The translations under genes and the position numbers were made by a program. 64,000 nucleotides of DNA from Monocercomonoides exilis PA203 (taxonomy: Eukaryota > Protista > Preaxostyla). Positions 6,620-58,900 of the stretch are shown piece after piece. Every line of letters begins with the position of its first letter. The first letter of the stretch is position 1. The notes beneath the pieces were generated by a model. It searched no databases. It had not been told where the DNA came from and saw nothing but the letters and a program-made list of their open reading frames with translations. Where the stretch lies: positions 992,001 to 1,056,000 of the forward strand of contig LSRY02000008.1 in NCBI GenBank assembly GCA_001643675.2, given 5' to 3'.

Positions 6620-9600
6620 ATGAACCTGATGGAAAATTCTAAATTTAATTACGTAACTATTTTTATTCGTATTTCTCCTGGTGTTCTTATTCCTTATCCT
6701 CTCGAAAAACATACAACAATAATTCAACTGAAGCTTATTATTGAAAAGGAGATATTAGTTTCTCACAAATTGTTGATGCTATACTACAATGGCACCTATC
6801 TTTCAAATTCAATTTCCATCCACGATTTGAAAATTGTATGCTTTTGACCATTTCACATTTTTGTAGATGTTAATTACTTTTTTTCTTTCAAAAATAATGA
6901 ATTAATATCAGAGCGAATGTCCAGTAATTAATCTAGTCATACGGGTATTCCTAAAAATTTAGTTATGAATGTATATATTATCTTTCTTATCTCTGTAATA
7001 ATTAGAAATCTGAAATGATTCATCAAAATGATAGCTTGGCTAAGCAAAAGGAGCAAAAATCTTCATTGGTATCACAACGACAAAAGCAACTTAACTTTGA
7101 AAACTCTGTTGATTTTATGGATTCATGCTTAACAACTACACGTTTGAATGCAGACATGCCTTTGTATGATCAAACGGATTTTGTCGATAAGCAGCCTCTT
7201 GGAACAAATCCGTTTGCGAAGCCAATGGAAGAAAATGCATTGCTACAAGGGGAAACTATTTTGCAACAGAAGAGACGAAAAGGGCAACGCGTTAATTTCG
7301 GCAGATGGAGAGTCCCAATCTCCTCACATCACACTCTCACCCCAGATTATACCTCCGCCGGTTTTAATTCGAACCACGGAGCGGCCGCTGACGGGAATTT
7401 TTACGGTGGAAGGGAAGCAAGTGGAAGAAGCACTGCAGACAAAGCCAGAAGCCGGAGAAGGGCACACACAAGGGCAGGAGGAGGAGAAGAAGAAAGAGGA
7501 GGAGGTGGTGGAACAGCAGCAGCGGTGGAGATGGAGATGGAGGAAGGGCGCGATTGGGAAGCCGTTGACTCGAGCGACGCGTGCACAACGCTGATGTCGC
7601 TGTCGGATTCGGAGTCAGCGTCGGCGTCGGAGTCAGAAAGCTCGCTGTTTGCGGAGAATCTGGCGCATCTGCGGGAGTTCGGTTACTCTGAGAAGCAGGC
7701 AAGGAAGGCGCTGAAGATGTGCCACTCGAATCTCGAAGCAGCTGTTGAGCAGCTGGCGTATGAGGAGATGCTGCGTGGTGAGGAGGAGGAGGAGGGGGAG
7801 GAGGAGGATGAGGATGATGATAAAGGAGAAAGAGAAGGAGGGAGAGAAGGAGGAAGAGAAGACGACGAAGACGAAGAAGATGATGTTGAAAAGACGGAAA
7901 GAAGTAAAGAAAGTGTACCGAACAAGCCAAAAAGTGCAAAAGCATCGAAAAGCAAGAAGAAGACAGAAGAAGCAGTGGAAGCGGTGGCTGAGGAAAATGT
8001 GCTGAATCTTCTGGGTTTGCAACAAGCGCAAATTGCAAGTGATTTGACAGGCGAAGAAACAAAAACAAAGACAAAGACAAAATCAAAATCGAGAGCAAAA
8101 ACAAAGGCAAAAACGAAAACGAAAACACAAAATGGGAAAAGTCACTTAACTAAAAAGATAAAGGAAGGTGATGAACTTTTATCAAAAGCTGAAGCGCCTT
8201 CTGAGTCTTCGATGAGTGCCAATGACAGAAACAAGAGAGACAGTGGAGATTTGGACCAGAGAGGGAGAAAACCAGAATTCTCGTTTTTCACTCCATCATC
8301 ATCGTCATCATCCTCTTCCTCTTCCTCTTCCTCTTCCTCTTCCTCTTCCTCTTCCTCTTCCTCTTCCTCTTCCTTCACTCATGCCTCTTCATCAAACACC
8401 CATTTCCAGTCACAATTCAATGAAATCGCTCTTTTTGTGCCGGCAGGGTCAGATTTCATGTGTAATATTGACGAAGCGGATGAGCTGACAGAAATCGAAG
8501 ACGGGCTGTGCTACGGGACAGACGGGGTGGCGATGAGGAATCCGCATTTTAGAGGCAAGAGAAGAAGGAGAGAAGGAGAAGGAAGAAAAGAAGAAGAAGA
8601 AGAAGGAAGAGGAGAAGGAGAAGGAAGAGGAGAAGGGAAAGAAGAAGGAGAAAGAGAACAAAGAACACGAGGAAGATCCAAAGGAGAAGCAGATAGGTCG
8701 ATTTCTTCTTCATCATCAAAAGAGATGGGAAATGAATGGAATTCTCAGGCACAGCAATCTTCAGCGCATTTGCAAGCAGACGCTCCATTTTATAGACATT
8801 TTGAAAGAATTGGAGACAAAATGACAGAAAAAGAAGCGAATGTGAGTGATTCTTCTTCTTCTCATTCTTCTTCTTCCTCCTCTTCCTCCTCTTCCTCCTC
8901 TTCCTCCTCTTCCTCCTCTTCCTCCTCTTCCTCCTCTTCCTCCTCTTCCTCTTCCTCTCATTCTTCTTCTTCTTCTCATTCTTCTTCTCGTTCTCCTCAT
9001 TCTTCTTCTTCCTCTTCTTCTTCTCATTCTTCTACCAATTCAATCGATTTGATCGATGAGTTTTCTGCCTCCAGCCACGAAGCTTCTTCTCTTCCGCGTC
9101 AGAAACGACTGTCAGACATTCTGAAAGAGAAGAGGGATGCTGTTGAATTGCAAAGAATGCAAAAAATGCAGAAATTACAAGGGAAAAACATGGGAAAGGA
9201 GGAAAAGGAAGTGGGAAAGGAGGAGGAGGAGGAAGAAGAAGAAGATAAAGATGAAGATGAAGATGATAATGAAGATGAAGAAGAAGATGATGAGAAGAAG
9301 AATAAAAAGAAAAAGAAAAAGAATAAAAATGGCTTTAGTGGGGAATGGAGAAGCGAGGAAAGAGAAAGAGAGCTGAAGAAGCAGAGGCAGAAGAGGAAAA
9401 AGAGGACTTTGGATGGCCGAATGGAAGAGATTGAGGAAGAAGAAGGAGAAGGAGAAAGAGAAGAAGGAGAAGGAGAAGGAGAAGGAGAAGGAGAAGGAGA
9501 AGAAGGAGAAGGAGAAGAAGAAGAAGATGATGATATTGAATGGGAGGAAGATAACATCATTCCGAAGAAAAGGACGAGGAGGATGGCGAATTCTGTGTTT

Positions 9601-9870
9601 GGAGACGAGTATGGATGGGAAGGAGAAAGAGAAGGGGGAAGAGGAAGAGGAGGAAGAGGAGGAAGAGAAGAAGAAGAAGAAGAAGATTATATATTTGACA
9701 GAGGAATCGGAGGAGGTTTGTTGGGAAGGGAAGATCTGACGGAAGAAGACAAGAAGAATGTGGAGACGGCGATGGAAGTGACGGGGAAGTCGTTTGAAAG
9801 AGTGAGAGTGACATATTTGGAGATGGATAAGAACCTGGAAAACACGATTGTTGCATTGCTGAACATATAA
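6620..9870 (+). CDS. Ubiquitin-like + UBA-domain protein with long acidic/poly-Ser linkers (Rad23-like layout)
   Basis: Exon 1 (about 6620-6835) is ubiquitin-fold-like (TTIIQLKLIIEKE...LMLYYNGTYL...SIHDLKI). Two short introns precede the long exon. UBA-like segments are LAHLREFGYSEKQARKALKMCHSNLEAAVEQL (about 7660-7755) and the C-terminal LTEEDKKNVETAMEVTGKSFERVRVTYLEMDKNLENTIVALL. Confidence 0.7.
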
Positions 9871-10572: not shown

Positions 10573-13000
10573 TCACTTTAAAAAACAATTGTCAAATAAC
10601 CTCACATCTCTTCCCAGAATTTTTGAACGCAATTTTTTATTCACCGAGCGTTTGCAAGGAGAAACAAACAGTAAATGTTGAATAATAACACCCGAATTTG
10701 CAGAATTCAAATTACTAACACAAGAAGAATCCGCACAAAAACCTCGAAGCAGCTCAAAGTCCCTCTGAACTTTATCTCTTTTAGCATTGCATTTTTTGGA
10801 GTTGAAAATCTTGTCATAGAATCTTGGCAGCATCTCTGCCACATCCAAAACACACCATTTCAATGGCTGTATTCTGCTTCTTTCTCCTTCATCAATGCTC
10901 AAAACATGCAAAGGCATGAAATTTTCCTCGTCTATGCTTGAAACAAAATCCATGTCAAAATAAAAACTTTCTTTTTTCTGTGAATAAATAGAAGAAGAAT
11001 GCGTTGTGAAAATAACATTGCCAGCATTTGAAACGAAATCGTGTGGATTTCTTTCTGTTGGAGAAGAAGAGCTTAAATGCGAATGTGTTTGAGAAAAAGG
11101 GAAAGATAATTTGCGAACTGATTGACAGGGCGAACGATAATCTTCACTTGAACAACAATTCAACGAAGAACTCGGCAAATGCGAAGAGCCAAAAGAAGAA
11201 CTTGAATCGCAAGGTGTTTGAAAAACCTCATTAAAAACAGATTTCTCTCTGTGAAAATTCATTTTCTGTGGATCAGGAAAAATGGATGAAGAAGGTGGTG
11301 AAAGAGAAGAAGCATCAAAAGCTGCTGAAGTTACATTTTTGATATCAAAACCAGATTGCCTCACGAAACTGCCCCTGCCTCTATCCTTCGAATGCTTTTC
11401 ATTCGAACTTCGTTTTTTCAGGCAATTTGCATTTCGAAACCTTTGCAGCGCTGTCATTGAATTCCACTGTGTCTGTTTTTCTTCTCTTTTCTGCTCCTTT
11501 TCGAGGCGACTCAAAAGAAATTCAAGATTTTTCGGCTTTAAATACTCTTTTTGCCTTTCATTTTCTGATTCTGTTTCTGAATCCTTATATCTTCTAACTG
11601 GAAAAGCATCTTCCTTTTGGTTCTCTTCTTCTTCTTCTCCTCTTCCTCCTCCTTCTCTTCCTCCTCTTTTTTTCTCATCAACCATATTCCTCCTCTCTAA
11701 CCTTATTTTCCCTTCTTTCTCAGCTAACTCCAAAACCTTCAGCTTCATTTCCTCAAGTGTCAATCTGCCAGCTCTGCTGCTTTCATATTCATTTCTTCCT
11801 TTTTCGTTATCTTCCTCTTCGCAACCTTTGCTTCCTCTTCCTTTTATTTCTTCACTTTTCCCTTTTTTCTCTCTCTTTTCCCTTTTTTCCCTTTTGACTG
11901 CTGAATTCTTTCTGTCTTCATCATCATCGACTTCTTCTTCTTCCTTTTCTTCTTTTTTTCCTTCAATTTCTATGACTCTTCTGCATCCATCCAAACTTTC
12001 ACATCCTTCGCATTTCTCCGGAAATTCCGCAGCATCTTTTATTTCGTCGTATTCCTCCTCTTCTTCCTTCATCAGCTTCCTCTCCTCTTCCTCCCACATT
12101 TTGCCCTCTTCTTCTTCCTCTTCTTCTCCAAGACTCCACCCTTTCTTCAGCCAAACCCCAAATACTTCATAGAACTGCCTCGCTTCTTTGATCTGTTTTT
12201 TCACTTCTCGTTTCCGCCTGGCCTTCCTTTCTGCTTCTTCGCTTTGCTCCTTCAGCACTGTTTCATCTGGGCAAAGTTCTTGTTCAGCTTCCCTGTTCGT
12301 TTCTCCATCTGTTTCCACTCGGTGAAATGTGCCCAGCCATTTTTCGTCCTCAGCCTTCCACCGCTCAATCAGCATCTCCCTTGCCACTCGCTCAACGTTC
12401 GATGAGGTCCCTCGAAAGTCTCGATATTCCACATCGCAGCAGAAATTATAGCTTAAATGCCTGGGGAAAATACTGGTTGTAATAATATCTGGATCGGCTA
12501 CCTCAAATGGAACCCCTCGCACAACAGAACGCATATTAAACAATTCGAAATTGTAGTCTTCATTTTTGTTTTTATCAGCTTTGAACTCTTCCTGTTTTTT
12601 TACATCTGAAGGATCAGTTTCATTAACTCTAAAATATGTTTGAATCATGCTGTTTGGAGCAGCAAATGCAGAATTCCTTGATAAATCATTAAATTGATAA
12701 GTGCCATTTGCACGCGTTTTGTTTTTTTGAAAAGTCTTCTCGTGAAAATATTGAGAGGGAAAGTTGCTATTTCTGGAGTAATCTGAAATTTATTTAAAAT
12801 CAAAAATAAAATTTTGAAAGAGTATTAAAATTTTTCTCAATTTTGATGCTTTTAAATACCGGATGAAGAAGTTGTATTAGCTTTTAAAAGAAATGCAACA
12901 CTTGTATTTTGCTCAACATCAAATGTGCTTGACGGATGATAAAAAGAAAAAAGATGAGAAGATAATGAAGAAGGCAACTCGCTTAAATGCACCTTACAAT
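10573..13000 (-). CDS. Hypothetical low-complexity protein (>700 aa, spliced)
   Basis: The 691-aa ORF extends in frame to an acceptor at about 12783, and an upstream exon (about 12860-13000) joins in frame. The start was not located and no domain was recognised. Confidence 0.6.
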
Positions 13001-17106: not shown

Positions 17107-18730
17107 CAGTTCCTGTGAAACATTCCGCTTGATGTTGGGATGACTGGCAATTTATGTTTCGAGTTTTGGACTGACAGTTAGCTTTATTCTTATTTGTTGA
17201 TTTTTACATGATGGTTTTTTTTCTCCAAACTTTTTGTGAAATAATGCATGCCAAAGATATGAAAAAGGGTTATGAAAAAAGAGCTTCAATGTTGATTTGT
17301 GATCTTTGGTGAATTGTTTGACGAAAAATACAAAAAAAGATTATTTTGTAAGTTAAAAAAGAAAGCTGTTATTAACAAATTCTTACATCCAAAAAAACCA
17401 AGGAAATCACAAATGCAGATAATTAAAAGAGACAAAATACAAGCATTCTTCTTTGCTTTCTTTTATTTTCCAAACAATAATAACTGAATTTGAGACAGAT
17501 TTTTCATTCGAATTGCGATATCCTCCCATTCCGATTAAAAGAATCATGTTTGATACACTTGCCTCGAATACACTCAGCTGAACCTTCTTCAGCGGAAAAG
17601 ATGTTCAGAAGATTGTGCCTGATCAATTTATATTTCTCCTTTCTTCAATGGCATTTCCATTGTGACCATCTCAAACAGTTCATGAGTCTTCTTCAGAGAA
17701 TCATTCACGTCTCTCCTCGAGGTTTTCTTCTCTTCATCTGTTTGCCTTCTTCCACAATTCGAAAGAGACAGTATTCAATCGGAACTCTAATTTTTGTCAT
17801 TCAGATATGTTTGAAGAGAATTTCTCACACTTCAATAAATGAGTTTTCAACAACACCAATGGAGCCTATTTCACAAAAGGATTTCCTTTTTTAATAATCT
17901 TTTTTTTCCACACATATTATTGTGTAATGTGATTTGTTAATGCGATATAAAAATGTGTATTTCTTCGAAGCTTTTTTTCAAATCATTTATGTGACACTGA
18001 CAGATATTTGTAATGTCTTTCTCAAAATCTTCACTTTGTGTGACATCAAATGAACCATCTGAATGTCAAAGTTCATGTTGTCTTTGCGAATATTCTGTGT
18101 TTTTTGCAAGACAGCAACAAAACACTCTCAATTCCCAAAAATGAACAAATATGAGCCAATTATTAACTGAATCGCAACTGTTGAATCTGATCAAAATGGC
18201 TGCAACAAAATCGTCAAAGCACAACAACCAAAAACAACAGTTCTCTCAACTCCAAAATCACAGAAATGCTCATTTCATTTTCAAAATGCCAAAGTGAATT
18301 TTCAGTCACATTGGCAAATTGAAAAAGAAAGAAAAAGAAAGAAAAAGAAAGAAAGAAGAAAATAAGATGATTTAAAGTGAGATTTTCTTTCACTATTTGC
18401 AAAATCAAATAAAAATGAGACTGGTAAATTTTCAGACAATAAAAAAAAAAATTAAAAAAATTAAAGCAATGAAATGAAATGAATCGCTTAAATTTCATAC
18501 AAAATGAAAAAAAAAATATTGAAGATGAATAGAAAGGTTATCAAAATGATTCTTATTTGAAGAATATCCGAGTGTTTGCAGAAGGTTAGAAAGTCACTTC
18601 AAAAGAAAGAAAGAAAGAATAACCATGCATTTCGATAGGCCGTTGAAGAGCCTTTATTGAGAAACCAGTTAATCAGCTGATTCATTGAAAGCATCTTAAA
18701 TGATGAATTCAATGCAAATATGACAAACAC

Positions 18731-21700
18731 TCATGCGGTTTTATCAATCGTCATCCATTCCGGAAGTGCACCCTGGACATCGCTTTTCCAGTAATCTGCC
18801 ATCGTATTTCCTTTCTTATCCTTCAACGAATAACTATGTCTCATCCACACTGGCGGTTCTGTTTTCACAAACTGAATCCATAGCATAGCCATTGTTTTCC
18901 CCTCCTTATCGCTAAGTGAAATGGCGTGTCTCATCCATTCTGGCGGATCTGTCTTCACACCCCAAATCCATATCATTGCCATCGTCCATCCATCCTTATC
19001 ATAAACTGTGATGCTGTGTCTCATCCATTCGGGTGGTTCTGTTTTCACAAGAGCAATCCAATGCATGGCCATCGTCCATCCATCCTTGTTTTGCAGAGTG
19101 ATTTCATGCCTCATCCAACTCGGTGGTTCTGTCTTCACACCCCAAATCCATATCATTGCCATCGTCCACCCATCCTTATCGCTTTGCGTCTTATTATGTC
19201 TCGTCCATTCTGGAGGTTCTGTCTTCACATTCTCAATCCACAGCATTGCCATTGTTCGTCCAAACTTATCGGCAAGCGTATAGTCGTGTCGCATTCGCTC
19301 TGGTGGTTCTGTCTTGTTCTCAATAATCCACCTCATTCCCGGCGTTTGTCCATTTTTGTCTTTCAATGTATCATCAAATTTCATCCATTCCGGTAATTCA
19401 GTTTCAACAAAAAATTCCCAATAATCTGCCATTGTCCATCCGTTATTATTTGTAAGTGCAATGTTGTGTCTCATCCATTCCGGTGGCTCTGTTTGAACAA
19501 ATTGAATCCAAAGCATGGACATTGTCCATCCGTTATTATTTGTAAGTGCAATGTCGTGTCTCATCCATTCTGGCGGTTCTGTTTGAACAAACTGAATCCA
19601 TATCAGAGCCATTGTCCATCCTTCCTTATCAGCAAGTTCATTGTCATGTCTCATCCATTCTGGAGGTTCTGTCTTGACATGATTAATCCATATCATAGCC
19701 ATTGTTGATCCGTCATTATCAGCAAGTGAAATATCGTGTCTCATCCATTCTGGTGGTTCAGTTTCAGTGAACTGAATCCACATCATCGCCATCGTCCATC
19801 CAAAATTATTTCTGATTGTTATGTCATGTCTCATCCATATTGGTGGGTCTTTCTTCACAAATTGAATCCACAACATTGCCATTGTTCGTCCAAACTTATC
19901 GGCAAGCGTGTTGTCGTGTCTCATCCATCCCGGTGGTTCTGTCTTGTTCTCAATAATCCACCTCATTCCCGGCGTTTGTCCATTTTTGTCTTTCAATGTT
20001 TCATCAAATACCATCCATTTCGGTAATTTAGTTTTAACATATATTTTCCAATAATCTGCCATCGTTTTCTCTTTCTTATCCTTCAACGAATTACAATGTC
20101 TCATCCATTCTGGTGGTTCTGTCTTGACATGAAAAATCCACTTCATTGCCATTGTTAATCCGTTCTTATCATAAACTGTGATACTGTGTCTCATCCATTC
20201 TGAAGGTTCTGTTTTGACATTTGAAATCCATATCATAGCCATTGTTGCTCCTTTATTGTTGCGAAGTGTGATGTCATGCCTCATCCACTCCGGTGGATCT
20301 GTTTTGACGTCTTGAATCCAGAACATAGCCATCGTCCATCCATCCTTCTGAGTTAGTGTAATATCGTGTCTCATCCATTCTGGTGGCTCATTCTTAACAA
20401 AGTGAATCCAAAACATAGCCATTGTCCATCCGTCTTTATAAGCAAGTGTAATATCGTGTCTCATCCATTCTGGCGGTTCTTTTTTGACGTTTGTGATCCA
20501 GAACATTGCCATTGTCCATCCATTATTATTTGTAAGTGCAATATCGTGTCTCATCCACTCGGATGGTTCTGTTTTGACGTCTTGAATCCACTTCATTGCC
20601 ATAGTCCATCCGTCTTTATTGGTTAGTGTAATGTCATGTCTCATCCATTTCGGTGGCTCCTTTTCAACAAATTGAATCCATATCATAGCCATTGTCCAGC
20701 CATCTTTATCTGAAAGTGTTGCATCGTGCCTCATCCATTCTGGCGGTTCTTTCTTGACGACTTGAATCCATATCATTGCCATTGTCCAGCCATCCTTTTG
20801 AGAAAGTGTTGCGTCATGTCTCATCCACTCTGGTGGGTCAGTTTGAACAAATTGAATCCAATGCATAGCCATTGTCATTCCGTCCTTATCAGTAAGTGTT
20901 ATATCATGTCTCATCCAATCTGGGGGTTCTGTTTTGACATTTGCAATCCATATCATAGCCATTGTGGATCCGTCCTTATTGCCAACTGTAATGTCATGCC
21001 TCATCCATTCTGGTGGTTCTGTTTTGACGTCTTGAATCCATAGCATGGCCATTGTTAATCCCTCCTTATTTCCAAGTGAAATATCGTGTCTCATCCATTG
21101 TGGAGGTTCTGCCTTGACGCATTCAATCCAGAACATAGCCATTGTGTATCCATCCTTATTGGTAAGTGTGATGTCATGTCTCATCCATTCTGGCGGTTCT
21201 TTCTTGACGACTTGAATCCACTTCATTGCCATAGTCCATCCGTCTTTATTGGTTAGTGTGATATCGTGCCTCATCCATTCTGGCGGCTCTGTTTTGACAT
21301 TATAAATCCATATCATTGCCATTGTTGACTCATAATTATTGCGGAGTGCGATGTCGTGCCTCATCCATTCTGGGGGTTCTGTCTTTACATTTTCAATCCA
21401 TAACATGGCCATTGTCCAACCATCCTTCTGAGTTAGTGTTGCGTCATGTCTCATCCATTGTGGAGGTTCTGCCTTGACGCATTCAATCCAGAACATAGCC
21501 ATTGTGTATCCATCCTTATTGGTAAGTGTGATGTCATGTCTCATCCATTCTGGCGGTTCTTTCTTGACGACTTGAATCCACTTCATTGCCATAGTCCATC
21601 CGTCTTTATTGGTTAGTGTGATATCGTGCCTCATCCATTCTGGCGGCTCTGTTTTGACATTATAAATCCATATCATTGCCATTGTTGCTCCTTTATTGTT

Positions 21701-22651
21701 GCGAAGTGTGATGTCATGCCTCATCCACTCCGGTGGATCTGTTTGAACAAACTGAATCCAGAACATGGCCATTGTCCAACCATCCTTCTGAGTTAGTGTT
21801 GCGTCATGTCTCATCCATTGTGGAGGTTCTGCCTTGACGCATTCAATCCAGAACATAGCCATTGTGTATCCATCCTTATTGGTAAGTGTGATGTCATGTC
21901 TCATCCATTCTGGCGGTTCTTTCTTGACGACTTGAATCCACTTCATTGCCATCGTCCATCCATCCTTCTGAGTTAGTGTAATATCGTGTCTCATCCATTC
22001 TGGTGGCTCATTCTTAACAAAGTGAATCCACAACATAGCCATTGTTGCGCCATTATTGTTGCAAAGTGTGATGTCATGTCTCATCCATTTTGGTGGTTCT
22101 GTTTGAACAAACTGAATCCACTTCATTGCCATAGTCCATCCGTCTTTATTGGTTAGTGTGATATCGTGTCTCATCCATTTCGGTGGATCTGTTTTGACGT
22201 CTTGAATCCACTTCATTGCCATAGTCCATCCGTCTTTATTGGTTAGTGTAATGTCATGTCTCATCCATTTCGGTGGCTCCTTTTCAACAAATTGAATCCA
22301 TATCATAGCCATTGTCCAGCCATCTTTATCTGAAAGTGTTGCATCGTGCCTCATCCATTCTGGCGGTTCTTTCTTGACGACTTGAATCCAAAACATAGCC
22401 ATTGTATTTCCTTTCTCAGTTCTAAGCGTAATATCGTGTCTCATCCATTCTGGTGGTTCTGTTTGAACAAATTGAAGCCACAACATGGCCATTGTCCATC
22501 CGTCATTATCAGCAAGTGAAATATCATGTTTCATTTCCGATGGAGGATCTGTCTTTTTCTCAGCAATCCATCGCATTGCTTCTGTTCTTCCATACTCGTC
22601 CCTTTTCAATGGATCACTTTTCAATTTTTGCATATCTTTTTCGCATTCCAT
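18731..22651 (-). CDS. Intronless Trp/Met-rich 30-aa tandem-repeat protein (about 43 units, ankyrin-like hairpin), copy 1
   Basis: Open frame of about 1306 aa from the ATG at 22651. Consensus HDITLxxKDGxTMAMxWIxxVKTEPPEWMR, with 90-bp DNA periodicity. Confidence 0.9.
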   Translation of the reverse strand: MECEKDMQKLKSDPLKRDEYGRTEAMRWIAEKKTDPPSEMKHDISLADNDGWTMAMLWLQFVQTEPPEWMRHDITLRTEKGNTMAMFWIQVVKKEPPEWMRHDATLSDKDGWTMAMIWIQFVEKEPPKWMRHDITLTNKDGWTMAMKWIQDVKTDPPKWMRHDITLTNKDGWTMAMKWIQFVQTEPPKWMRHDITLCNNNGATMAMLWIHFVKNEPPEWMRHDITLTQKDGWTMAMKWIQVVKKEPPEWMRHDITLTNKDGYTMAMFWIECVKAEPPQWMRHDATLTQKDGWTMAMFWIQFVQTDPPEWMRHDITLRNNKGATMAMIWIYNVKTEPPEWMRHDITLTNKDGWTMAMKWIQVVKKEPPEWMRHDITLTNKDGYTMAMFWIECVKAEPPQWMRHDATLTQKDGWTMAMLWIENVKTEPPEWMRHDIALRNNYESTMAMIWIYNVKTEPPEWMRHDITLTNKDGWTMAMKWIQVVKKEPPEWMRHDITLTNKDGYTMAMFWIECVKAEPPQWMRHDISLGNKEGLTMAMLWIQDVKTEPPEWMRHDITVGNKDGSTMAMIWIANVKTEPPDWMRHDITLTDKDGMTMAMHWIQFVQTDPPEWMRHDATLSQKDGWTMAMIWIQVVKKEPPEWMRHDATLSDKDGWTMAMIWIQFVEKEPPKWMRHDITLTNKDGWTMAMKWIQDVKTEPSEWMRHDIALTNNNGWTMAMFWITNVKKEPPEWMRHDITLAYKDGWTMAMFWIHFVKNEPPEWMRHDITLTQKDGWTMAMFWIQDVKTDPPEWMRHDITLRNNKGATMAMIWISNVKTEPSEWMRHSITVYDKNGLTMAMKWIFHVKTEPPEWMRHCNSLKDKKEKTMADYWKIYVKTKLPKWMVFDETLKDKNGQTPGMRWIIENKTEPPGWMRHDNTLADKFGRTMAMLWIQFVKKDPPIWMRHDITIRNNFGWTMAMMWIQFTETEPPEWMRHDISLADNDGSTMAMIWINHVKTEPPEWMRHDNELADKEGWTMALIWIQFVQTEPPEWMRHDIALTNNNGWTMSMLWIQFVQTEPPEWMRHNIALTNNNGWTMADYWEFFVETELPEWMKFDDTLKDKNGQTPGMRWIIENKTEPPERMRHDYTLADKFGRTMAMLWIENVKTEPPEWTRHNKTQSDKDGWTMAMIWIWGVKTEPPSWMRHEITLQNKDGWTMAMHWIALVKTEPPEWMRHSITVYDKDGWTMAMIWIWGVKTDPPEWMRHAISLSDKEGKTMAMLWIQFVKTEPPVWMRHSYSLKDKKGNTMADYWKSDVQGALPEWMTIDKTA

Positions 22652-24039
22652 TTTATCGCTCAATGCTTAGGTTTAGCTGCTCGTCCTGCAATATAAGCAG
22701 AAAAAATGTCAATCGTTAAAAACTATTATTTGAAATATATATTATATATTTGATCATAAATGAGCATTTTTTTAAATACTGTTTATCATCTTTAAATATA
22801 TTAGAAAATGAGCATAAAGTGATTGCATGATTTTTGGCAGTGTTGCATTTTGTTATTCAAACATTTTTTTCAAAACAATTTTAATTTTTTAATATTAATA
22901 ATTCATATTTTTATTTCTTTTGACGTTCGTTCAACAAATTTTTTGTGAATGAAAATGAAAAGCCAAGTTGTGAAAAATAGCAAACCTGTGAAATTATGTT
23001 GAGTCTTATATTTTCTGCTCTTTTGCTTTTGCACCAAAACTCTCAGAAACATGAAAATGATTAAATTCAGATATTTGTTATAACCAACTCATTTCTTTTT
23101 TATTCACATTTCAAATCGCTTCTGGGATGCATTCATTTGGATCAGCCGCATCAAGAGTTGAGTGAGTGAGTGAGTGTGAGTGTGAGTGTCTAAGGGTGTG
23201 GCAGAAGAGAATGGAAAGATGAATGCCATTCACTCTGATGGAGAACATGCACATTCTGAAGAGAGGCAGAAATGCTGCCTTTGGAATAGAAATGGCTGAA
23301 TGAAAAGACAAAAGCGAAAGGGCAAAAGAGAGAAAAGAGAGAAAAGAGAGAAAAGAGAGAAAAGAGAGAAAAGGGCGAAAAAGGAGAAAAGGGATGTTTG
23401 AATGGAAAATGTGAATGTTCAGAGCAAATGGATAGGAAAAGAATGTGACACTCAACATCATTCAGAATGAGAAGTGAGAGTTGAAAAATTAATTGTGAAA
23501 TTGAGAGGATTATCAAAATGTTGGAAATGAAGAGAAAGAAAAAGAGAAAGAAAAAGAAAAAGAAATAGAAATAGAAATAGAAATAGAAAAAGAAAAAGAG
23601 AAAGAAAAAGAAAATGGGTTTTGATGATGCTCTTTGGACGAGCTGGGCGGCAAAGGCGAACAAGAATCATTTGAAGAAAATGCAGACATTATGAACAGAT
23701 TCGAATTACATAACAGCCAATTGCAACAACAAATGGAAGAATTATTCCGTGTTGCAACATGAGAATTTGATGGTCAATAAGTTCTCAAAAACGAAGAAGA
23801 TGATCTTTTCATCAGCCAAATTAAAAAATCTTGTTAATGAAGAGATCGAAGGAGAGTGAGAAGAAACCCTATTATCTCCAAAAAATGCTGCTTGATATGG
23901 ATTGTCCATGGAAATGGAGCTTAACACAAAAAATGCTGTTGGTTTGAATGGAAAAAAGACATTAAAAGGATTTTAAAATAATTTGTCTTGCATTGATTTA
24001 ATAAATTCCTAAAAAGAACACACCTGTCCTCCATATAGC

Positions 24040-45099: not shown

Positions 45100-47152
45100 G
45101 ATATCAACTAATTTGGATCCTGTTTTTCTTTGTAAAGCGAAATAAATATCCATAAATAACATGAATCAAATTTTAATGGGAACGGAATGATCTGCATTTT
45201 TTGATAATTTGTGATTTTTTGTAGGACAAAATTAAAGTCATGGAACTTTTCAAAAAAATATAGACATATTGAATTTTAAAATGTATTTTGAAATGAAGCC
45301 TATTTTTCATGGGGGAGGGGGGGGGGGTTGAAAACCTTCCTTCAAGCTTCCACGAGAAATTGGTTGGTTTCAAGGGGTGCAAAGCCACTTTGTTCATTCT
45401 AAATATATTTTTTGTAAATATTTTTATGAAATTCAATTATTTTTAAAAAAATATGAAAATTCGATCAAAACCTTAAAAGAAAAAATGAAAATACTTGTTG
45501 AAGAAAAAAGAAAAGCAGGGCAGAAAAAATTAAAGCATACGATGTTATCTTTTCAACACAGAAAATACATGAATAAATTAGAACGAATGGCACATATTGT
45601 GTATGATGGCGTCGTCAGGATCACAGACGCCAACAAATCTAAGCAAATCAGCCGCAGCAGCATTAAAAACGCAGTTCGGGCGTTGCGAACAAAAAGTGAA
45701 GTTGGAAAACCAGGGAGACTGCAGGCAATCAGCAAAGAGAAGGAAGAAACAGTTCTGGATGTGATCAAAATTGATTCTGTTTGTGGGAGCAGTTTAACAA
45801 TGAAGAAAACAAGTGAATTGGTTTGTGCAAGTTTTTTATTGAAACAATTCCATTTTTTCTTTTGAAGGAAAATGTTTTAAATGATGCGAAAAACGAAAAC
45901 GAGACTAATTAAAAAGTTTCGAATTCAGCAGTATTTGAATTTCAATAGCGACATCCCGATTTGAAAAAAAGCAAAACGAAAAGTTTAGACATAAATCGGC
46001 TGGCTGTGTCATGCAAAAGTGTGATGAAGCCCTGGCATCAAATGGTAACAGAATCACATGAAAAAAATCATTACACACCTTCATTAATATTTAACGTTGA
46101 TGAATCATCTTTGCGTATCCCTTCTTCTGCCAGAATTAGTGTAATTCATCCATCCAACCAAAGCGCTGGGTACAGTAAGGAAGCGCAAAGAATGGACAAT
46201 GCAACATTTGCTGCTGCCGTGGCTGTTGATGGTTATTCATTGCCTTGCATCATTCTCTGGCCAAGTGTTAAACAACCGGACGAACTGAAGCCTCTGCTCT
46301 CTCCAACTCTGGACATCTGGCCTAACAAAAGTGGCTGGATGGACAAGCAAAACTTCAAGAAATATACAGAAACAGTTCTCCTCCCTTCCATCGTTGAAAG
46401 AAGAAAGCACATGTCATTTGAAACAGAGAAATGCCTTCTTTTCATCGACTCTCATTTTTCTCGCGGGGATCCTTCAATTTGGAAAGCCTTTTCAGAAAAT
46501 TACATAGATGTCGTAACACTCATCCTCCACAGCACTCATTTGTCTCAGCCCCTCGAAAGAGGAGTATTTGCCACTCTCAAAACTTCTCTTTCTTCATCAT
46601 TTGATGTTCCATCATCTACTTCATCGTCTGCTTCAAGAAAAGCACTTGTCGACGTGCTTCCTCAAGAAATTCACTCCGCTTTCACTCCTTCTGTAATTAA
46701 AAAAGCTGTTAAACAAAGCGGAGTCCTTCATTATACGTTCGGTCCGGTTCTTCGCAAACTACCGGAATCATCAAAATACTCTCTTCCTTCCCATCGGAAC
46801 CGTTTCGATTATTTTGGAATGTTAATTACAAAAAAAGAACTTCTCGAAGATTGGGAAAGATTTTTAGGGAGAAATGAAGAAAAGGAGAATAAAAAAGACA
46901 TGAAACAGGTGATAGAAAACGAAAAAGATGAAATGATTGAATTCAAACATAAAATCAAAAGAAAACGCTCTGACGTTATTTTTGATGAACCAAACGAAGA
47001 GGAAAACGAAGAGATGCAAAGAAAACCAGGAAAAAGAAAGATAATTCGAAGAATTGATTCTTCTTTTTTATTTAATAAAATTTTTCTAAAATTTTCACTT
47101 CAAAAATATGTGTCAAAATAAAAAAAATGGGTTGGGGTTAAATGATAACCTT
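45100..47152 (+). mobile_element. pogo/Tigger-like DNA transposon, near full length, degenerate
   Basis: Transposase at about 45485-47121, with an intron near 45821-45867 and a frameshift near 45900-45960. Motifs IFNVDESSL, FIDSHFS and HSTHLSQPLERG. The 3' end GGGGTTAAATGATAACCT|TA lies at about 47151. The upstream GAAGCCTATTT/G-tract is shared with the 1-1422 copy. Confidence 0.8.
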
Positions 47153-52989: not shown

Positions 52990-55900
52990 TTCTGCCACAC
53001 ACACACTCACACTCACTCACTCACTCACTCACTCACTCACTCACTCAACTCTTGATGCGGCTGATCCAAATGAATGCATCCCAGAAGCGATTTGAAATGT
53101 GAATGAAAAAATAAAAAAGAAATGAGTTGGTTATAACAAATATCTGAATTTAATCATTTTCATGTTTCTGAGAGTTTTGGTGCAAAAGCAAAAGAGCAGA
53201 AAATATAAGACTCAACATAATTTCACAGGTTTGCTATTTTTCACAACTTGGCTTTTCATTTTCATTCACAAAAAATTTGTTGAACGAACGTCAAAAGAAA
53301 TAAAAATATGAATAATTAACATTAAATTTTTTTTTGTTTTGAAAAAAATGTTTGAATAACAAAATGCAACACTGCCAAAAATCATGCAATCACTTTATGC
53401 TCATTTTTTCATTTATTTAAAGATGATAAACAGTATTTCAAAATTTTATTCTTTGATGATCAAATATATAATATATATTTCAAATAATAGTTTTTAACGA
53501 TTGACATTTTTTCTGCTTATATTGCAGGACGAGCAGCTAAACCTAAGCACTGAGCGATAAAATGGAATGCGAAAAAGATATGCAAAAATTGAAAAGTGAT
53601 CCATTGAAAAGGGACGAGGATGGAAGAACAGAAGCAATGCGATGGATTGCTGAGAAAATGACAGAACCTCCATCGGGAATACGACATGATATTTCACTTG
53701 CTGATAATGACGGATGGACAATGGCCATGTTGTGGCTTCAATTTGTTCAAACAGAACCACCAGAATGGATGAGACACGATATCACACTTTCAAATGATAA
53801 TGGATGGACAATGGCCATGAATTGGATTCAGTTTGTTCAAACAGAACCGCCAGAATGGATGAGGCACGATATCACACTTAGAACCAAGAAAGAAAATACG
53901 ATGGCCATGTTCTGGGTTCAGTTTGTTCAAACAGAGCCGCCAGAATGGATGAGACACGATATCACACTAACCAATAAAGACGGATGGACAATAGCTATGA
54001 TATGGATTCAAGTCGTCAAGGCAGAACCTCCACAATGGATGAGACATGACGCAACACTAACTCAAAAGGATGGCTGGACTATGGCCATGTTATGGATTGA
54101 AAATGTAAAGACAGAACCCCCAGAATGGATGAGGCACGACATCGCACTCCGCAATAATTATGAGTCAACAATGGCAATGATATGGATTTATAATGTCAAA
54201 ACAGAGCCGCCAGAATGGATGAGGCACGATATCACACTAACCAATAAAGACGGATGGACTATGGCAATGAAGTGGATTCAAGTCGTCAAGAAAGAACCGC
54301 CAGAATGGATGAGACATGACATCACACTTACCAATAAGGATGGATACACAATGGCTATGTTCTGGATTGAATGCGTCAAGGCAGAACCTCCACAATGGAT
54401 GAGACATGACGCAACACTAACTCAGAAGGATGGTTGGACAATGGCCATGTTCTGGATTCAGTTTGTTCAAACAGATCCACCGGAGTGGATGAGGCATGAC
54501 ATCACACTTCGCAACAATAAAGGAGCAACAATGGCAATGATATGGATTTCAAATGTCAAAACAGAACCTCCAGAATGGATGAGACACAGTATCACAGTTT
54601 ATGATAAGAACGGATTAACAATGGCCATGCTTTGGATTCAAGACGTCAAAACAGAACCTCCAGAATGGATGAGGCATGACATCATTCTACGTAACAAAGA
54701 CGGCCCAACGATGGCGATGATGTGGATTCAAGTCGTCAAGAAAGAACCGCCAGAATGGATGAGACATGATATTGCACTTTCCGACGAGGATGGATACACA
54801 ATGTCGATGTTTTGGATTCAGTTTGTTCAAACAGAACCCTCAGAATGGATGAGACATGGCATTACACTTCGCGATAGCGGTGGAGAGACTATGGCCATGT
54901 TGTGGATTCACTTTGTCAAGATGGAGCCGCCAGAATGGATGAGGCACGATATCACACTTAGAACCAAGAAAGAAAATACGATGGCCATGTTCTGGATTCA
55001 GTTTGTTCAAACAGAGCCGCCAGAATGGATGAGACACGATATTACGCTTAGAACTGAGAAAGGAAATACAATGGCTATGTTTTGGATTCAAGAAGTCAAA
55101 ACAGAACCGCCAGAATGGATGAGACACGATATTACGCTTAGAACTGAGAAAGGAAATACAATGGCTATGTTTTGGATTCAAGAAGTCAAAACAGAACCGC
55201 CAGAATGGATGAGGCACGATATCACACTAACCAATAAAGACGGATGGACTATGGCAATGAAGTGGATTCAAGTCGTCAAGAAAGAACCGCCAGAATGGAT
55301 GAGACATGACATCACACTTACCAATAAGGATGGATACACAATGGCCATGTTCTGGATTCAAGACGTCAAAACAGATCCACCGGAGTGGATGAGGCATGAC
55401 ATCACACTTCGCAACAATAAAGGAGCAACAATGGCTATGATATGGATTTCAAATGTCAAAACAGAACCTTCAGAATGGATGAGACACAGTATCACAGTTT
55501 ATGATAAGAACGGATTAACAATGGCCATGCTTTGGATTCAAGACGTCAAAACAGAACCTCCAGAATGGATGAGGCATGACATCATTCTACGTAACAAAGA
55601 CGGCCTAACGATGGCGATGATGTGGATTCAGTTCACTGAAACTGAACCCCCAGAATGGATGAGACATTGTAATTCATTGAAAGATAAGAGAAGATGTACA
55701 ATGGCAGATTATTGGGAATTTTTTGTTGAAACTGAATTACCGGAATGGATGAAATTTGATGATACATTGAAAGACAAAAATGGACAAACGCCGGGAATGA
55801 GGTGGATTATTGAGAACAAGACAGAACCACCAGAGCGAATGCGACACGACTATACGCTTGCCGATAAGTTTGGACGAACAATGGCAATGCTGTGGATTGA

Positions 55901-58900
55901 GAATGTGAAGACAGAACCTCCAGAATGGACGAGACATAATAAGACGCAAAGCGATAAGGATGGGTGGACGATGGCAATGATATGGATTTGGGGTGTGAAG
56001 ACAGAACCACCGAGTTGGATGAGGCATGAAATCACTCTGCAAAACAAGGATGGATGGACGATGGCCATGCATTGGATTGCTCTTGTGAAAACAGAACCAC
56101 CCGAATGGATGAGACACAGCATCACAGTTTATGATAAGGATGGATGGACGATGGCAATGATATGGATTTGGGGTGTGAAGACAGATCCGCCAGAATGGAT
56201 GAGACACGCCATTTCACTTAGCGATAAGGAGGGGAAAACAATGGCTATGCTGTGGATTCAGTTTGTGAAAACAGAACCGCCAGTGTGGATAAGACATAGT
56301 TATTCGTTGAAGGATAAGAAAGGAAATACGATGGCAGATTACTGGAAAAGCGATGTCCAGGGTGCACTACCGGAATGGATGACGATTGATAAAACCGCAT
56401 GAGTGTTTGTCATATTTGCATTGAATTCATCATTTAAGATGCTTTCAATGAATCAGCTGATTAACTGGTTTCTCAATAAAGGCTCTTCAACGGCCTATCG
56501 AAATGCATGGTTATTCTTTCTTTCTTTCTTTTGAAGTGACTTTCTAACTTTCTGCAAACACTCGGATATTCTTCAAATAAGAATCATTTTGATAACCTTT
56601 CTATTCATCTTCAATAATTTTTTTTTCATTTTGTATGAAATTTAAGCGATTCATTTCATTTCAACACTTTTATTTTTTTAATTTTTTTTTTTTTTTTGTC
56701 TGAAAATTTACCAGTCTCATTTTTATTTGATTTTGCAAATAATGAAAGAAAATCTCAATTCAAATCACTTGTTTTCTTTTTATTTTTCTTTTTATTTTTT
56801 CTTTTTTTCAATTTACCAATGCGACTGAAAATTCACTTGGGCATTTTGAAAATGAAATGAGCATTTCTGTGATTTGGAGTTGAGAGAACTGTTGTTTTTG
56901 GTTGTTGTGCTTTGACGATTTTGTTGCAGCCATTTTGATCGGATTCAACAGTTGCAATTCAGTTAATAATTGGCTCATATTTGTTCATTTTTGGGAATTG
57001 AAAGTGTTTCGTTGCTGTCTTGAAAAAAACACAGAATATTCACAAAGGCAACACCTGTTTTGACATTCAGATGTTTCATTTGAAATCACACGAAGTGACG
57101 ATTTTGAGAAAGACATTACAAATATCTGTTTGTGTCACATTAATGATTTATTAAAAAAAAGCTTCGAAGAAATATTCATTTTTATATCTCATTAACAAAT
57201 CACGTTACACAACAAAATGTGTGAAAAAAATAAAATTGATTATTAAAAAAGGAAATCATTTTGTGAAATAGACTCCATTGGCGTTGTTGAAAACTCATTT
57301 ATTGAAGTGTGAGAAATTCTCTTCAAACACATCTGAATGACAAAAATCGGAGTTCCGATTGAATACTGTCTCTTTCGAATTGTGGAAGAAGGCAAACAGA
57401 TGAAGAGAAGAAAACCTCGAGGAGAGAGCGTGAATAATTCCATGAAGAAGACTCATGAACTGTTTGAGAAGGTCATTATGGAAATACCATTTAAGAAAGG
57501 AGAAAAATAAATGGATCGTACACAATCTTCTGAACATCTTTTCTGCTGAAGAAGGTTCAGCTAAATGCATTCAAGGCAAGAGGTTCAGACATGATTCTTT
57601 CAATCTGAATGGGAAGATATAAAAATTTGAATGAAAAATCTGTCTCAAATTCAGTTATTATTGTTTGGAAAAGATAAGAAAGCAAAGAAGAACGCTTGTA
57701 TTTTGTCTCTTTTAATTGCGAAGAAGCATGAATGAGAGCGTCAAATGTCTTCAGTTCAATCGAGAAAGAAACAGGATCAAAAACACATCAATGTCTTTGT
57801 GCATTTGTTTTTATACTAATATTTTTCATTTGCACAACTCCAAAAAATCATAAATCAACATTGAAGTTCTTTTTTCATAACCCTTTTTCATATCTTTGGC
57901 ATGCATTATTAAACAAAAAGTTTGAAGGAAATAAACGTTATAAAAAAATCAACAAATAAGAACAAAGCCAATAACCAGTCCAAAACTTTAAATAGAAATC
58001 ACAAAAGATGCCAACATCAAACAGAATGTTTCACAAGAACTGTTAAGGACGGATAAACACAGGCGAAGAAAGCGGAGCAAGCCCTGAAGGAGTTTTGTGC
58101 TTCAGATAGAGTGAAGAGTCGAAGCTGAAAGGCGGCTGGAGCTCAGAAACACGAGGCGTTGGAAGGGAAGATGGAGGCAGCTGTGTGGCTGTGGAAGAGT
58201 TGCTGGCAAATTGGCTGCTGAAGCCCTGCGATTGAGCTGAAGTGGCTGGAGAATGAGAAGGAAGAGAAGAAGAAAAAAAGAAAGTGTTTGAGGACGAGCT
58301 TTCAATTGGATAGGATGTAGATGAAATTGATGTTGTTTGTGAAAGAGAACTGGATTTTGAGGAAGGAAAACGTGAGTTGGGTGAAATGAGTGATGGAGAA
58401 TGAGAAGAAGAAGAAGAAGAAGATGATGATAATGATGAAGGAGAAGTGAATGAAGAATTTCGTGCATTCATGTTGCTTGGCGAAGAGTAATGATAACGCA
58501 ATGAGCCAACAGATGATGATGATGATGATGAATAAGAATGACTTGTATTTTCACTTGTCTCATGCGAAGACTCCGAAGGAGTCGAGCGAAATGCATCCAG
58601 CGTCTGGTAAATTGGCACGTTTTGAGAGAAAATGGAAGAAGAAGTTGTTTCAATCAGCTCAAAAAGCGTAGGATCTGGTTGCTTCCAATTCGCCCCCAAC
58701 ATTCCCATCGGCTTCTCTGCCACTTGCCAATTACCATTGAACGCACTTTTTGTTGCATAACTGTCATATCCATCTTCTTTTTCACCTTCTTCTCCTTTTC
58801 CTCCTTCTTCCTCTTCTTCATTATCCTTCTTTTCACACTGCCCCAGCAGCACCCACAGCAGGTCCATTGCCTCGCACACCACACTCCGATACCTCCCTCT

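Follow-up and report, generated by a model that had tools for sequence, protein, structure and literature searches.

Introduction

Ankyrin (ANK) families comprising tens to hundreds of cytosolic, repeat-only paralogues are found in Giardia (the 21.1 proteins), Trichomonas and mimivirus, and they are built from the standard repeat of ~33 residues, which is recognised by Pfam. In the engineered ankyrin proteins known as DARPins, the library of Binz et al. from 2003 is reported to vary positions 2, 3, 5, 13, 14 and 33 of the repeat. The paratope of DARPins is formed by their randomised positions, which are situated on the concave surface (PMC8229355, PMC8683736). In the literature, we found no description of a 30-residue repeat family of the kind presented here, nor any ankyrin work on Monocercomonoides.

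The window analysed in this study is a stretch of 64,000 nucleotides from Monocercomonoides exilis PA203 (assembly GCA_001643675.2, contig LSRY02000008.1, positions 992,001 to 1,056,000 of the forward strand), an amitochondriate model protist, and all coordinates below are counted within it. The best explanation for one gene in this window is that its product is a cytosolic 157-kDa solenoid of derived, shortened ANK repeats and a probable protein binder, to which, taken as a whole, we assign a probability of about 0.78.

An intron-less gene covered in RNA libraries

The gene, its probable 3′ UTR and a close paralogue were located as follows:

18731 to 22651, minus strand: complete intron-less coding sequence, 1306 codons and TGA (ATG at 22651–22649, TGA at 18731–18733)
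18491 to 18730, minus strand: probable 3′ UTR, approximate end (AATAAA at 18658–18653, AAATAA at 18558–18553)
53562 to 56402, plus strand: close paralogue of 946 aa and 31 units, with the common N-terminus and C-terminal module

The minus-strand frame 18731 to 22663 is the sole long ORF at the locus, and its first ATG lies at 22651. The coding part from 22651 to 18734 is uninterrupted and encodes 1306 aa with 43 units of 30 aa. The protein has a pI of 6.0 and is rich in Met (9.6%) and Trp (8.3%). Over its whole length, no hydrophobic segment was found (Kyte-Doolittle maximum over 19 residues, 0.9) and no catalytic domain was detected by Pfam, in agreement with the preliminary description of this DNA, which had seen neither a transmembrane segment nor a catalytic domain.

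The gene is present in RNA libraries. RNA-library contigs covered 18.5–22.67 kb; these were short assembled contigs from one study, to which near-identical paralogues could contribute some. The flanks at 22676–23236 and 18001–18187 had essentially zero RNA contigs, and those on 18491–18954 showed few or zero differences. AATAAA and AAATAA are polyadenylation motifs that have been described for M. exilis (PMC8767320).

Forty-three units in perfect register

TRF analysis showed a period of 90 bp (41.1 copies, score 2232) and a higher-order period of 360 bp. Division of the protein into 30-residue segments, starting at residue 12, gave 43 units that keep perfect register with zero indels, which bears out the earlier count of about 43 in-register 90-bp units. 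The consensus of the regular units of module 1 is HDITLxxKDGxTMAMxWIxxVKTEPPEWMR. In this gene the per-position entropy was ~0–0.6 bits at H1, G10, T12, M13, A14, M15, W17, I18, V21, P25, P26, W28, M29 and R30, and above 1.9 bits at positions 6, 9, 11, 16, 19 and 20, so the near-invariant scaffold and the variable residues listed beforehand proved accurate in this alignment check. Family-wide, the same six positions peaked again at 2.9–3.4 bits (451 unique units). Among 443 units, 103 types of di-residue were found at positions 19–20 and 415 six-position signatures were distinct, with aromatic and aliphatic residues making up ~42% of the variable positions.

The plus strand within the array carries ORFs of 80–156 aa with GTG starts, which are antisense frames held open by the repeat.

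Units of N-cap and C-cap type occur at both ends of the array and also inside it, and the minus-strand features are arranged as follows:

22529 to 22651, minus strand: 11-residue leader MECEKDMQKLK and unit 1, N-cap type GRTEAMRWIAEKKTDPP, the cap being kept in 20 paralogues
20099 to 22528, minus strand: units 2–28, regular, module 1 (register, entropy, AF2 and structure matches)
20009 to 20098, minus strand: unit 29, internal C-cap type KTMADYWKIYVKTKLPKWMV, resembling the last unit
19919 to 20008, minus strand: unit 30, internal N-cap type GQTPGMRWIIENKTEPP, resembling unit 1
19469 to 19918, minus strand: units 31–35, regular, module 2
19289 to 19468, minus strand: units 36–37, second internal pair of C-cap type WTMADYWEFFVETELPEWMK and N-cap type GQTPGMRWIIENKTEPP
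18839 to 19288, minus strand: units 38–42, regular, module 3
18734 to 18838, minus strand: unit 43, terminal C-cap type NTMADYWKSDVQGALPEWMT, and tail IDKTA

AF2 confidence was low in the leader (pLDDT < 50 at residues 1–10) and fell to 64–81 across units 29–30 and to 70–83 at the pair 36–37, with a pTM of 0.57 across the cap-pair junctions. Both cap types are conserved in paralogues and metagenomic relatives. In our reading, the 43 units fall into three capped stacks, 29, 7 and 7 units long, which pairs of C-cap-type and N-cap-type units join in register.

The unit as a derived ankyrin repeat

By sequence homology and by similarity of the predicted fold, the 30-residue unit is a derived ANK repeat. 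Profiles of three units matched canonical ANK in hhalign with a probability of 97.4% (E 1.3e-11), in a register that aligns DxDGxTMAMxWIxxV with DKNGxTALMxAAxxG. A phmmer search of 1.84 billion representatives reached the canonical ANK protein P0056 (Pfam Ank_2, 672 bits) at E 1.6e-19, and BLASTP against P0056 gave E 2e-9, the gaps amounting to 1 + 2 residues in each unit. The intermediate relatives P0006, P0017 and P0047 had weak or threshold Ank_2 matches, P0006 being the sole relative above the Pfam gathering score (29.8 vs 27.3 bits), and the language-model neighbours were ANK clusters throughout (0.94). On the 1306-aa protein, the Pfam Ank models gave zero matches even at E ≤ 1, and nothing meaningful was found among PDB sequences by phmmer with the protein or by hmmsearch with the family profile. 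Sub-threshold or repeat-inflated Pfam matches, such as YycE-like_C and others, were rejected as spurious, with no stretch passing.

The AF2 model (pLDDT 91.1, pTM 0.84) contains one helix of 8–9 residues and one of 3 residues per unit; since the second helix has only ~3 residues, the predicted helix pair is degenerate. Searching the PDB with Foldseek returned ANK structures for all of the top 50 matches (4rlv, E 2.7e-11), and in VIA the model aligned with AnkB (24 repeats) at Z 18.5 over 294 of 311 residues, with model residues 7–311 laid onto 337 AnkB residues and thus ten units onto ten repeats. The top matches in BFVD were ANK proteins of giant viruses and poxviruses. AF2, Foldseek and VIA all point to an ANK-type stacked solenoid, and the first proposal, of a solenoid whose scaffold is fixed and in which a few positions are hypervariable, is supported. 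The labels “TALE/PPR-like” and “uncharacterised solenoid” in the preliminary description have to be given up given the ANK profile match of 97.4% and the top Foldseek and VIA matches, which were all ANK (Z ≤ 18.5); the full unit has a confident match in an already characterised family.

Compared with the ~33-residue period of ANK, the period here is exactly 30 in all 43 units. Of the ANK consensus motifs, G and T have been kept and A14 falls on the small/hydrophobic core of helix 1, whereas TMAM stands where ANK has TPLH, VK where it has GH and EPPxWMRH where it has LLxxGA. Unit positions 6–12 (xNKDGxT) retain the ANK beta-hairpin/loop and positions 13–21 (MAMxWIxxV) the inner helix. Three residues have been lost in and after the outer helix, of which a single turn (PPxW) remains inside the invariant EPPxWMRH, and Met and Trp fill the core in place of the usual Leu/Ala. 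The preliminary description had likened the start of the unit to the ankyrin hairpin and first helix, and had noted a length of 30 rather than 33 aa with the second helix replaced by EPPEWMRH; hhalign, BLASTP and AF2 support both points, the second helix being largely replaced.

Variable positions and selection

In the hhalign register, the hypervariable positions 6, 9, 11, 16, 19 and 20 correspond to ANK positions 33, 3, 5, 10, 13 and 14. From this register and helix periodicity, we infer that the six positions sit at the tips of the hairpins and on the exposed side of the inner helix, which line the concave groove. By rough counting on 90-nt units with no codon model (one count by parsimony on a tree of 451 units and one over sister pairs), dN/dS was 0.63 (CI 0.51–0.75) at the variable positions, 0.18 over the other 24 positions, scaffold included, and 0.04–0.1 at core positions. 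The scaffold is under purifying selection, and the variable positions are under relaxed constraint. No positive selection was detected, as both counting methods gave values below 1 at the variable positions. Because dN/dS there is below 1, diversification may be mere relaxation, and the value of 0.63 does not demonstrate the “programmable” surface suggested earlier.

By analogy with ankyrins and DARPins, each stack probably binds protein or extended-peptide partners along the groove. The binding surfaces would diversify by point substitution at the weakly constrained positions, and the family would further duplicate, shuffle and convert whole units.

A large family in the genome

The M. exilis genome holds at least 99 open frames of this family, one third of them on a single contig. 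Nearly all family frames are open, with up to 1661 aa intact and stops in a few matches only. The 1306-aa gene and the paralogue at 53562 to 56402 share whole units that are identical in DNA; units 37–43 and the last seven units of the paralogue (53562–56399) are identical at 88–90 of 90 nt. Unit numbers among close paralogues are 14, 31 and 43. A genome search with P0001:340–473 revealed no RING-bearing family member, the matches ending before the RING or reading through stops, and the inspected members consisted of repeats only. Pfam misses this subtype, and therefore the ~100 large genes are probably filed as hypothetical proteins.

RING-fused relatives in metagenomes

An unrestricted representative search yielded 220 relatives, and no full-length homologue was found in a band of 0.55–1.75x the length. 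Outside this genome, the nearest relatives come from metagenomes, and many of these proteins are RING-fused. The closest (P0001–P0004, P0007 and P0009; 36–49% identity, E down to 1.5e-69) are unnamed “hypothetical proteins” on short or virus-like contigs. The cap type of unit 43 also precedes the RING in metagenomic relatives; the 1306-aa protein itself closes with its C-cap unit and the tail IDKTA. That the metagenomic contigs are viral is suggested by their gene density and strand bias and by ORFans, dNK and T5orf172; it stays a suggestion because IMG/VR scans, run with the family alignment and with P0001 and P0047, turned up zero relatives.

Discussion

Several other explanations were weighed. 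A structural or cytoskeletal scaffold or elastic tether, in which length outweighs the exact surface, is unlikely. In its favour, the top structural hits are long ANK solenoids (AnkB, ankyrin-1 and NOMPC), and the 29 units of module 1 recall the NOMPC spring (29 repeats) and the ankyrin membrane-binding domain (24 repeats), with the Giardia 21.1 proteins as another comparator. The differing unit numbers of close paralogues and the weak constraint at variable positions would also suit such a role. However, the protein lacks an anchoring domain, a membrane-binding motif and a coiled coil, and ~100 paralogues with 415 surface signatures exceed a purely mechanical need. Slightly less probable still is a substrate-recognition module of a ubiquitin ligase, whose repeats would choose targets while the ligase part acts in trans. 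Its attraction is that the closest outside relatives carry the same repeat and C-cap, with a RING finger at the C-terminal end, whereas the genome search found zero RING-fused members and the inspected ones are repeats only; moreover, this would be a special case of protein binding with the fold unchanged.

That the family is a selfish or decaying, functionless expansion, its frames open through recent duplication and perhaps spread by transposons or acquired from giant viruses, seems very improbable. The very recent duplication of units and blocks (90 of 90 nt identical), the clustering of one third of the family on one contig and the relatives on virus-like contigs could be read this way, but dN/dS at the scaffold is 0.04–0.2 although synonymous sites are well diverged, frames to 1661 aa are intact with stops in few matches, and RNA libraries cover the gene between silent flanks. 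We give least credence of all to a TALE/PPR-style programmable reader of nucleic acid, in which each unit would read one base, coded by the di-residue that follows WI. A perfectly regular register, long arrays and two adjacent hypervariable helix residues recall such readers, yet the homology and fold point to ANK, zero TALE or PPR structures appear in the top 50, and Pfam gives zero PPR or TAL matches, the structural neighbours being solely ANK. The 30-residue unit carries 103 di-residue types with no small alphabet. Its variation is shared among six positions, some of them in the hairpin, and many of the variable residues are aromatic or aliphatic in a protein of pI 6.0. The nucleic-acid target entertained in the preliminary description is therefore unsupported (pI 6.0, ~42% aromatic and aliphatic residues at the variable positions, 103 di-residues, 415 signatures in 443 units).

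We thus prefer a solenoid of shortened ANK repeats that probably binds protein, the ligand and cellular role being drawn from analogy. The family defines a short and distinct subtype within the most common protein-interaction repeat, and it illustrates how much of an ANK unit can go without loss of stacking: what remains is a one-turn outer helix and a Met/Trp core. The RING-fused relatives on virus-like contigs offer a testable lead to function and origin. As a speculation that we regard as a long shot, the ~100 genes could be a natural DARPin-like repertoire of diversified intracellular binders, with a minimal 30-residue ANK unit as their new scaffold. Giant-virus-like elements, in which the scaffold is RING-fused, would share or exchange this repertoire, and its task would be to recognise a wide range of variable targets, such as those of a host-virus conflict. 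If this were true, the Met/Trp-rich unit of one and a bit helices would also give binder engineering a new and smaller scaffold.

Comparison with known repeat systems

With TALE and PPR proteins, the protein shares long tandem arrays, a near-fixed scaffold and a few specificity-type positions, but those proteins have two full helices per unit and periods of 34 and 35, wind around DNA or RNA as a superhelix and combine a small residue code with basic charge, and zero sequence or structure matches link them to this protein. Like the lineage-specific ANK expansions of protists and giant viruses, the family comprises many cytosolic repeat-only paralogues with rapid duplication turnover; it differs from those of Giardia 21.1, Trichomonas and mimivirus in being a distinct short subtype. 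The metagenomic “TEPP”-type RING proteins have in common with it the unit TMAxxWIxxxKTEPPxWMxH of 29–31 residues and an equal C-cap type, whereas they carry 6–12 units and then a RING, and the M. exilis members have no RING and are far longer and more numerous.

Canonical ANK (PF00023/PF12796, clan Ank), exemplified by the 24-repeat domain of AnkB/AnkR (4rlv, 1n11), has the same hairpin-G-x-T-helix start, one-to-one stacking of units and N- and C-capping units, and its variable residues likewise lie in the hairpin and where the inner helix ends. In contrast, the repeat described here has a period of 30, a one-turn outer helix and a Met/Trp core, does not contain TPLH and GH/LLxxGA, is invisible to Pfam and shows zero indels over 43 units. 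With DARPins the family shares a fixed consensus scaffold, a few diversified surface positions per repeat and dedicated caps. It differs in being natural, in its shorter unit, in its arrays of 7–29 units against 2–3 internal repeats, in the additional variable ANK position 10 and in ANK position 2, which is only moderately variable. Five of the six hypervariable positions (ANK 33, 3, 5, 13 and 14) coincide with those reported for the DARPin library, so that the placement of variable residues matches the choice made by protein engineers.

Sequence and probable transcription of the repeat gene

The sole long open reading frame of the region lies on the minus strand (18731..22663), with the following start and stop codons.

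22651, minus strand: first ATG of the gene
18731-18733, minus strand: TGA stop codon

The product has 1306 aa (157 kDa, pI 6.0) and lacks any hydrophobic segment; Met (9.6 %) and Trp (8.3 %) are extremely abundant. Tandem Repeats Finder reported 41 copies of a 90-bp period, plus a higher-order period of 360 bp, and cutting the protein every 30 residues from residue 12 gave 43 units in perfect register, with 0 indels. By per-position entropy, positions H1, G10, T12, M13, A14, M15, W17, I18, V21, P25, P26, W28, M29 and R30 are near-invariant and positions 6, 9, 11, 16, 19 and 20 hypervariable, and the same six positions peak (2.9-3.4 bits) among 451 unique paralogue units. The preliminary description of a fixed 30-aa scaffold with hypervariable positions was thus accurate. 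Purine-rich microsatellites flank the gene on both sides, at 18321-18361 (GAAAAAGAAA)n, 23324-23391 (AAAAGAGAG)n and 23530-23614 (AAGAAA)n.

In four metatranscriptome runs from a single study, contigs map across 18.5-22.67 kb, with essentially zero coverage in bins 22676-23236 and 18001-18187, and the stop codon and 3′ UTR are bridged by pieces free of errors. These contigs, which carry no information on strand, ends or level, support transcription of the gene or of its near-identical paralogue.

Elsewhere in the window, a 386-aa ORF (45961-47121, plus strand) whose product matches the DDE_1 endonuclease domain at E 2.7e-9 represents a pogo/Tigger-type transposase remnant or copy. Two further ORFs, of 951 aa (7015-9870, plus strand) and 691 aa (10573-12648, minus strand), consist mostly of poly-Ser, poly-Glu and Gly/Arg/Glu low-complexity runs; a putative UBA-like stretch was seen by eye in the former, and a Pfam scan of the latter returned 0 domains.

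Identity and predicted fold of the repeat

The product was unrecognised in a Pfam scan, and PDB sequences gave no match to either the protein sequence or the family profile. When 1.84 billion representatives were searched exhaustively with phmmer, 220 relatives were recovered, the top ones (P0001-P0004, metagenomic and RING-fused; 36-41 % identity) carrying the same unit, TMAxxWIxxxKTEPPxWMxH. Pfam Ank_2 matches were weak or at threshold in the intermediate relatives P0006, P0017 and P0047, and phmmer reached canonical ankyrin (ANK) proteins at E 1.6e-19 (P0056; Ank_2 672 bits). BLASTP aligned residues 1-311 with P0056 unit on repeat, with gaps of 1 + 2 residues per unit. When three-unit blocks were compared with three-repeat canonical ANK blocks by profile-profile alignment, a probability of 97.4 % was obtained (E 1.3e-11), placing DxDGxTMAMxWIxxV on DKNGxTALMxAAxxG, and the language-model neighbours of the protein were ANK clusters without exception.

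The AlphaFold2 model of residues 1-311, built on an alignment of 19 paralogous N-termini, has a pLDDT of 91.1 and a pTM of 0.84; each unit forms a helix of 8-9 residues (13-21) and a single-turn helix (27-29), with bridge residues 6 and 12. The top 50 Foldseek hits in the PDB were ANK proteins only (AnkB 24 repeats at E 2.7e-11), and VIA-align superposed the model on AnkB with Z 18.5 over 294 aligned residues, model residues 7-311 covering 337 AnkB residues, that is, ten repeats under ten units. A BFVD search returned ANK proteins of giant viruses and poxviruses. Given the sequence and profile matches, the model and the structure searches, the repeat is a derived ankyrin repeat: three residues have been lost in and after the outer helix, which is now one turn inside the invariant EPPxWMRH. 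It is a new short ANK subtype within a very large lineage-specific family; neither the motif nor an ANK expansion in M. exilis was reported in the literature searched.

Family organization and unit turnover

In the M. exilis PA203 ONT assembly (82,301,135 bases, 101 contigs; PMC8767320), two genome searches turned up no fewer than 99 separate open frames that contain the unit; their lengths run from 100 to 1661 aa, and stops interrupt few of them. At least 36 lie on the window's contig C80 (1.96 Mb, 2.4 % of the assembly), of which the window spans C80:992001-1056000, both counts being lower bounds tallied from the two search tables. Local clustering on C80 is strong and includes an inverted pair of 859-aa family genes (C80:91487 and C80:102101).

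The last unit (TMADYW...LPxWM) has counterparts in units 29 and 36, and the first (GxTxxMRWIxExKTEPP) in units 30 and 37, so that the protein reads as a series of three capped stacks (29, 7 and 7 units) that follow one another in register. A second AlphaFold2 model (units 25-40, pTM 0.57) kept the secondary structure, with confidence falling exactly at both junctions. Several C-cap/N-cap-type junctions also occur in a 1646-aa gene on contig 48, as in other members.

Within the gene, three sets of units (9, 13 and 17; 12 and 16; 4 and 22) are each identical at 90/90 nt. The last seven units of a 946-aa paralogue (window 53562-56399) are virtually identical to units 37-43, and further blocks are common to the two genes in altered order. 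A third close paralogue matches the window gene in its N-terminus and C-terminal module and has one internal cap junction.

L039 2678-3970 (G000:C80:980678-981970), minus strand: 430-aa paralogue with 14 units, located 11 kb upstream of the window

Unequal exchange and conversion change the unit number rapidly.

Relatives outside the genome

Many outside relatives end in a C-terminal RING finger, and a genome search found no RING in the M. exilis family members. P0047, P0009 and P0005 come from virus-like, putatively viral contigs of low GC, on which genes are packed densely on one strand and include paralogue arrays, ORFans, a T5orf172 gene and a deoxynucleoside kinase; scans of IMG/VR found 0 relatives.

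L031 10001-12806: P0047 and a neighbouring 394-aa gene, groundwater metagenome contig
L034 4831-6975: P0006 gene, Logan SRR31929897 contig of 10.5 kb

L031 looks like a contig of giant-virus type. In both P0047 and the 394-aa gene, short ANK repeats of the PP type are combined with a Cys-rich zinc-finger tail at the C-terminus; downstream of the pair, three small paralogues that start MRHFEFGKLNVI form an array. In P0006, an unrelated N-terminal part of ~330 aa precedes the TEPP-type repeat, here 31 residues long. The P0006 contig is GC-rich (55 %) and eukaryote-like, with NifU_N, Rpb10, EF-hand and Rce1-like neighbours; the short ANK subtype is therefore present in at least one other eukaryote.

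P0015 (162 aa, metagenome) is a minimal 4-unit relative starting MGTFGSK, and the contig 48 member (L037 127-5067) has an internal MGSSIST immediately ahead of its first cap unit. The N-myristoylation pattern MGxxxS/T is matched by both, but not by the start of the window gene (MECEKD).

Variable positions and the likely binding face

In the profile-profile register, unit positions 6, 9, 11, 16, 19 and 20 correspond to ANK positions 33, 3, 5, 10, 13 and 14, and positions 16, 19 and 20 lie on one helix with spacing i, i+3, i+4. In ANK proteins the concave binding face is built from the hairpin together with the inner helix at its exposed end. The DARPin positions of Binz et al. in 2003 are reportedly 2, 3, 5, 13, 14 and 33. 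DARPin libraries have their randomised positions on the concave ANK face (PMC8229355, PMC8683736). From this register, the variable residues are probably exposed on an ANK-type binding face.

Parsimony counts on the 451-unit tree gave dN/dS of 0.67-0.9 at the six variable positions, against 0.22 for the remaining 24, with core positions at 0.04-0.1; sister pairs, limited to those with <=15 differences, gave 0.63 (bootstrap CI 0.51-0.75) at variable positions versus 0.18 (0.16-0.21) elsewhere. The scaffold is therefore under strong purifying selection and the variable positions are weakly constrained, with both estimates for the six positions below 1 and positive selection there not demonstrated.

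A nucleic-acid code is unlikely given 103 different di-residues at positions 19-20, 415 six-position signatures among 443 units, and an aromatic plus aliphatic share of about 42 % at the six positions; the variable surface looks like the paratope type rather than a small nucleotide code. Most likely, the protein is a modular protein-binding scaffold acting via the canonical ANK face. The analogy drawn with TALE and PPR proteins holds as "fixed scaffold, few variable positions", a design already known of ankyrin repeats, and breaks down beyond that level.
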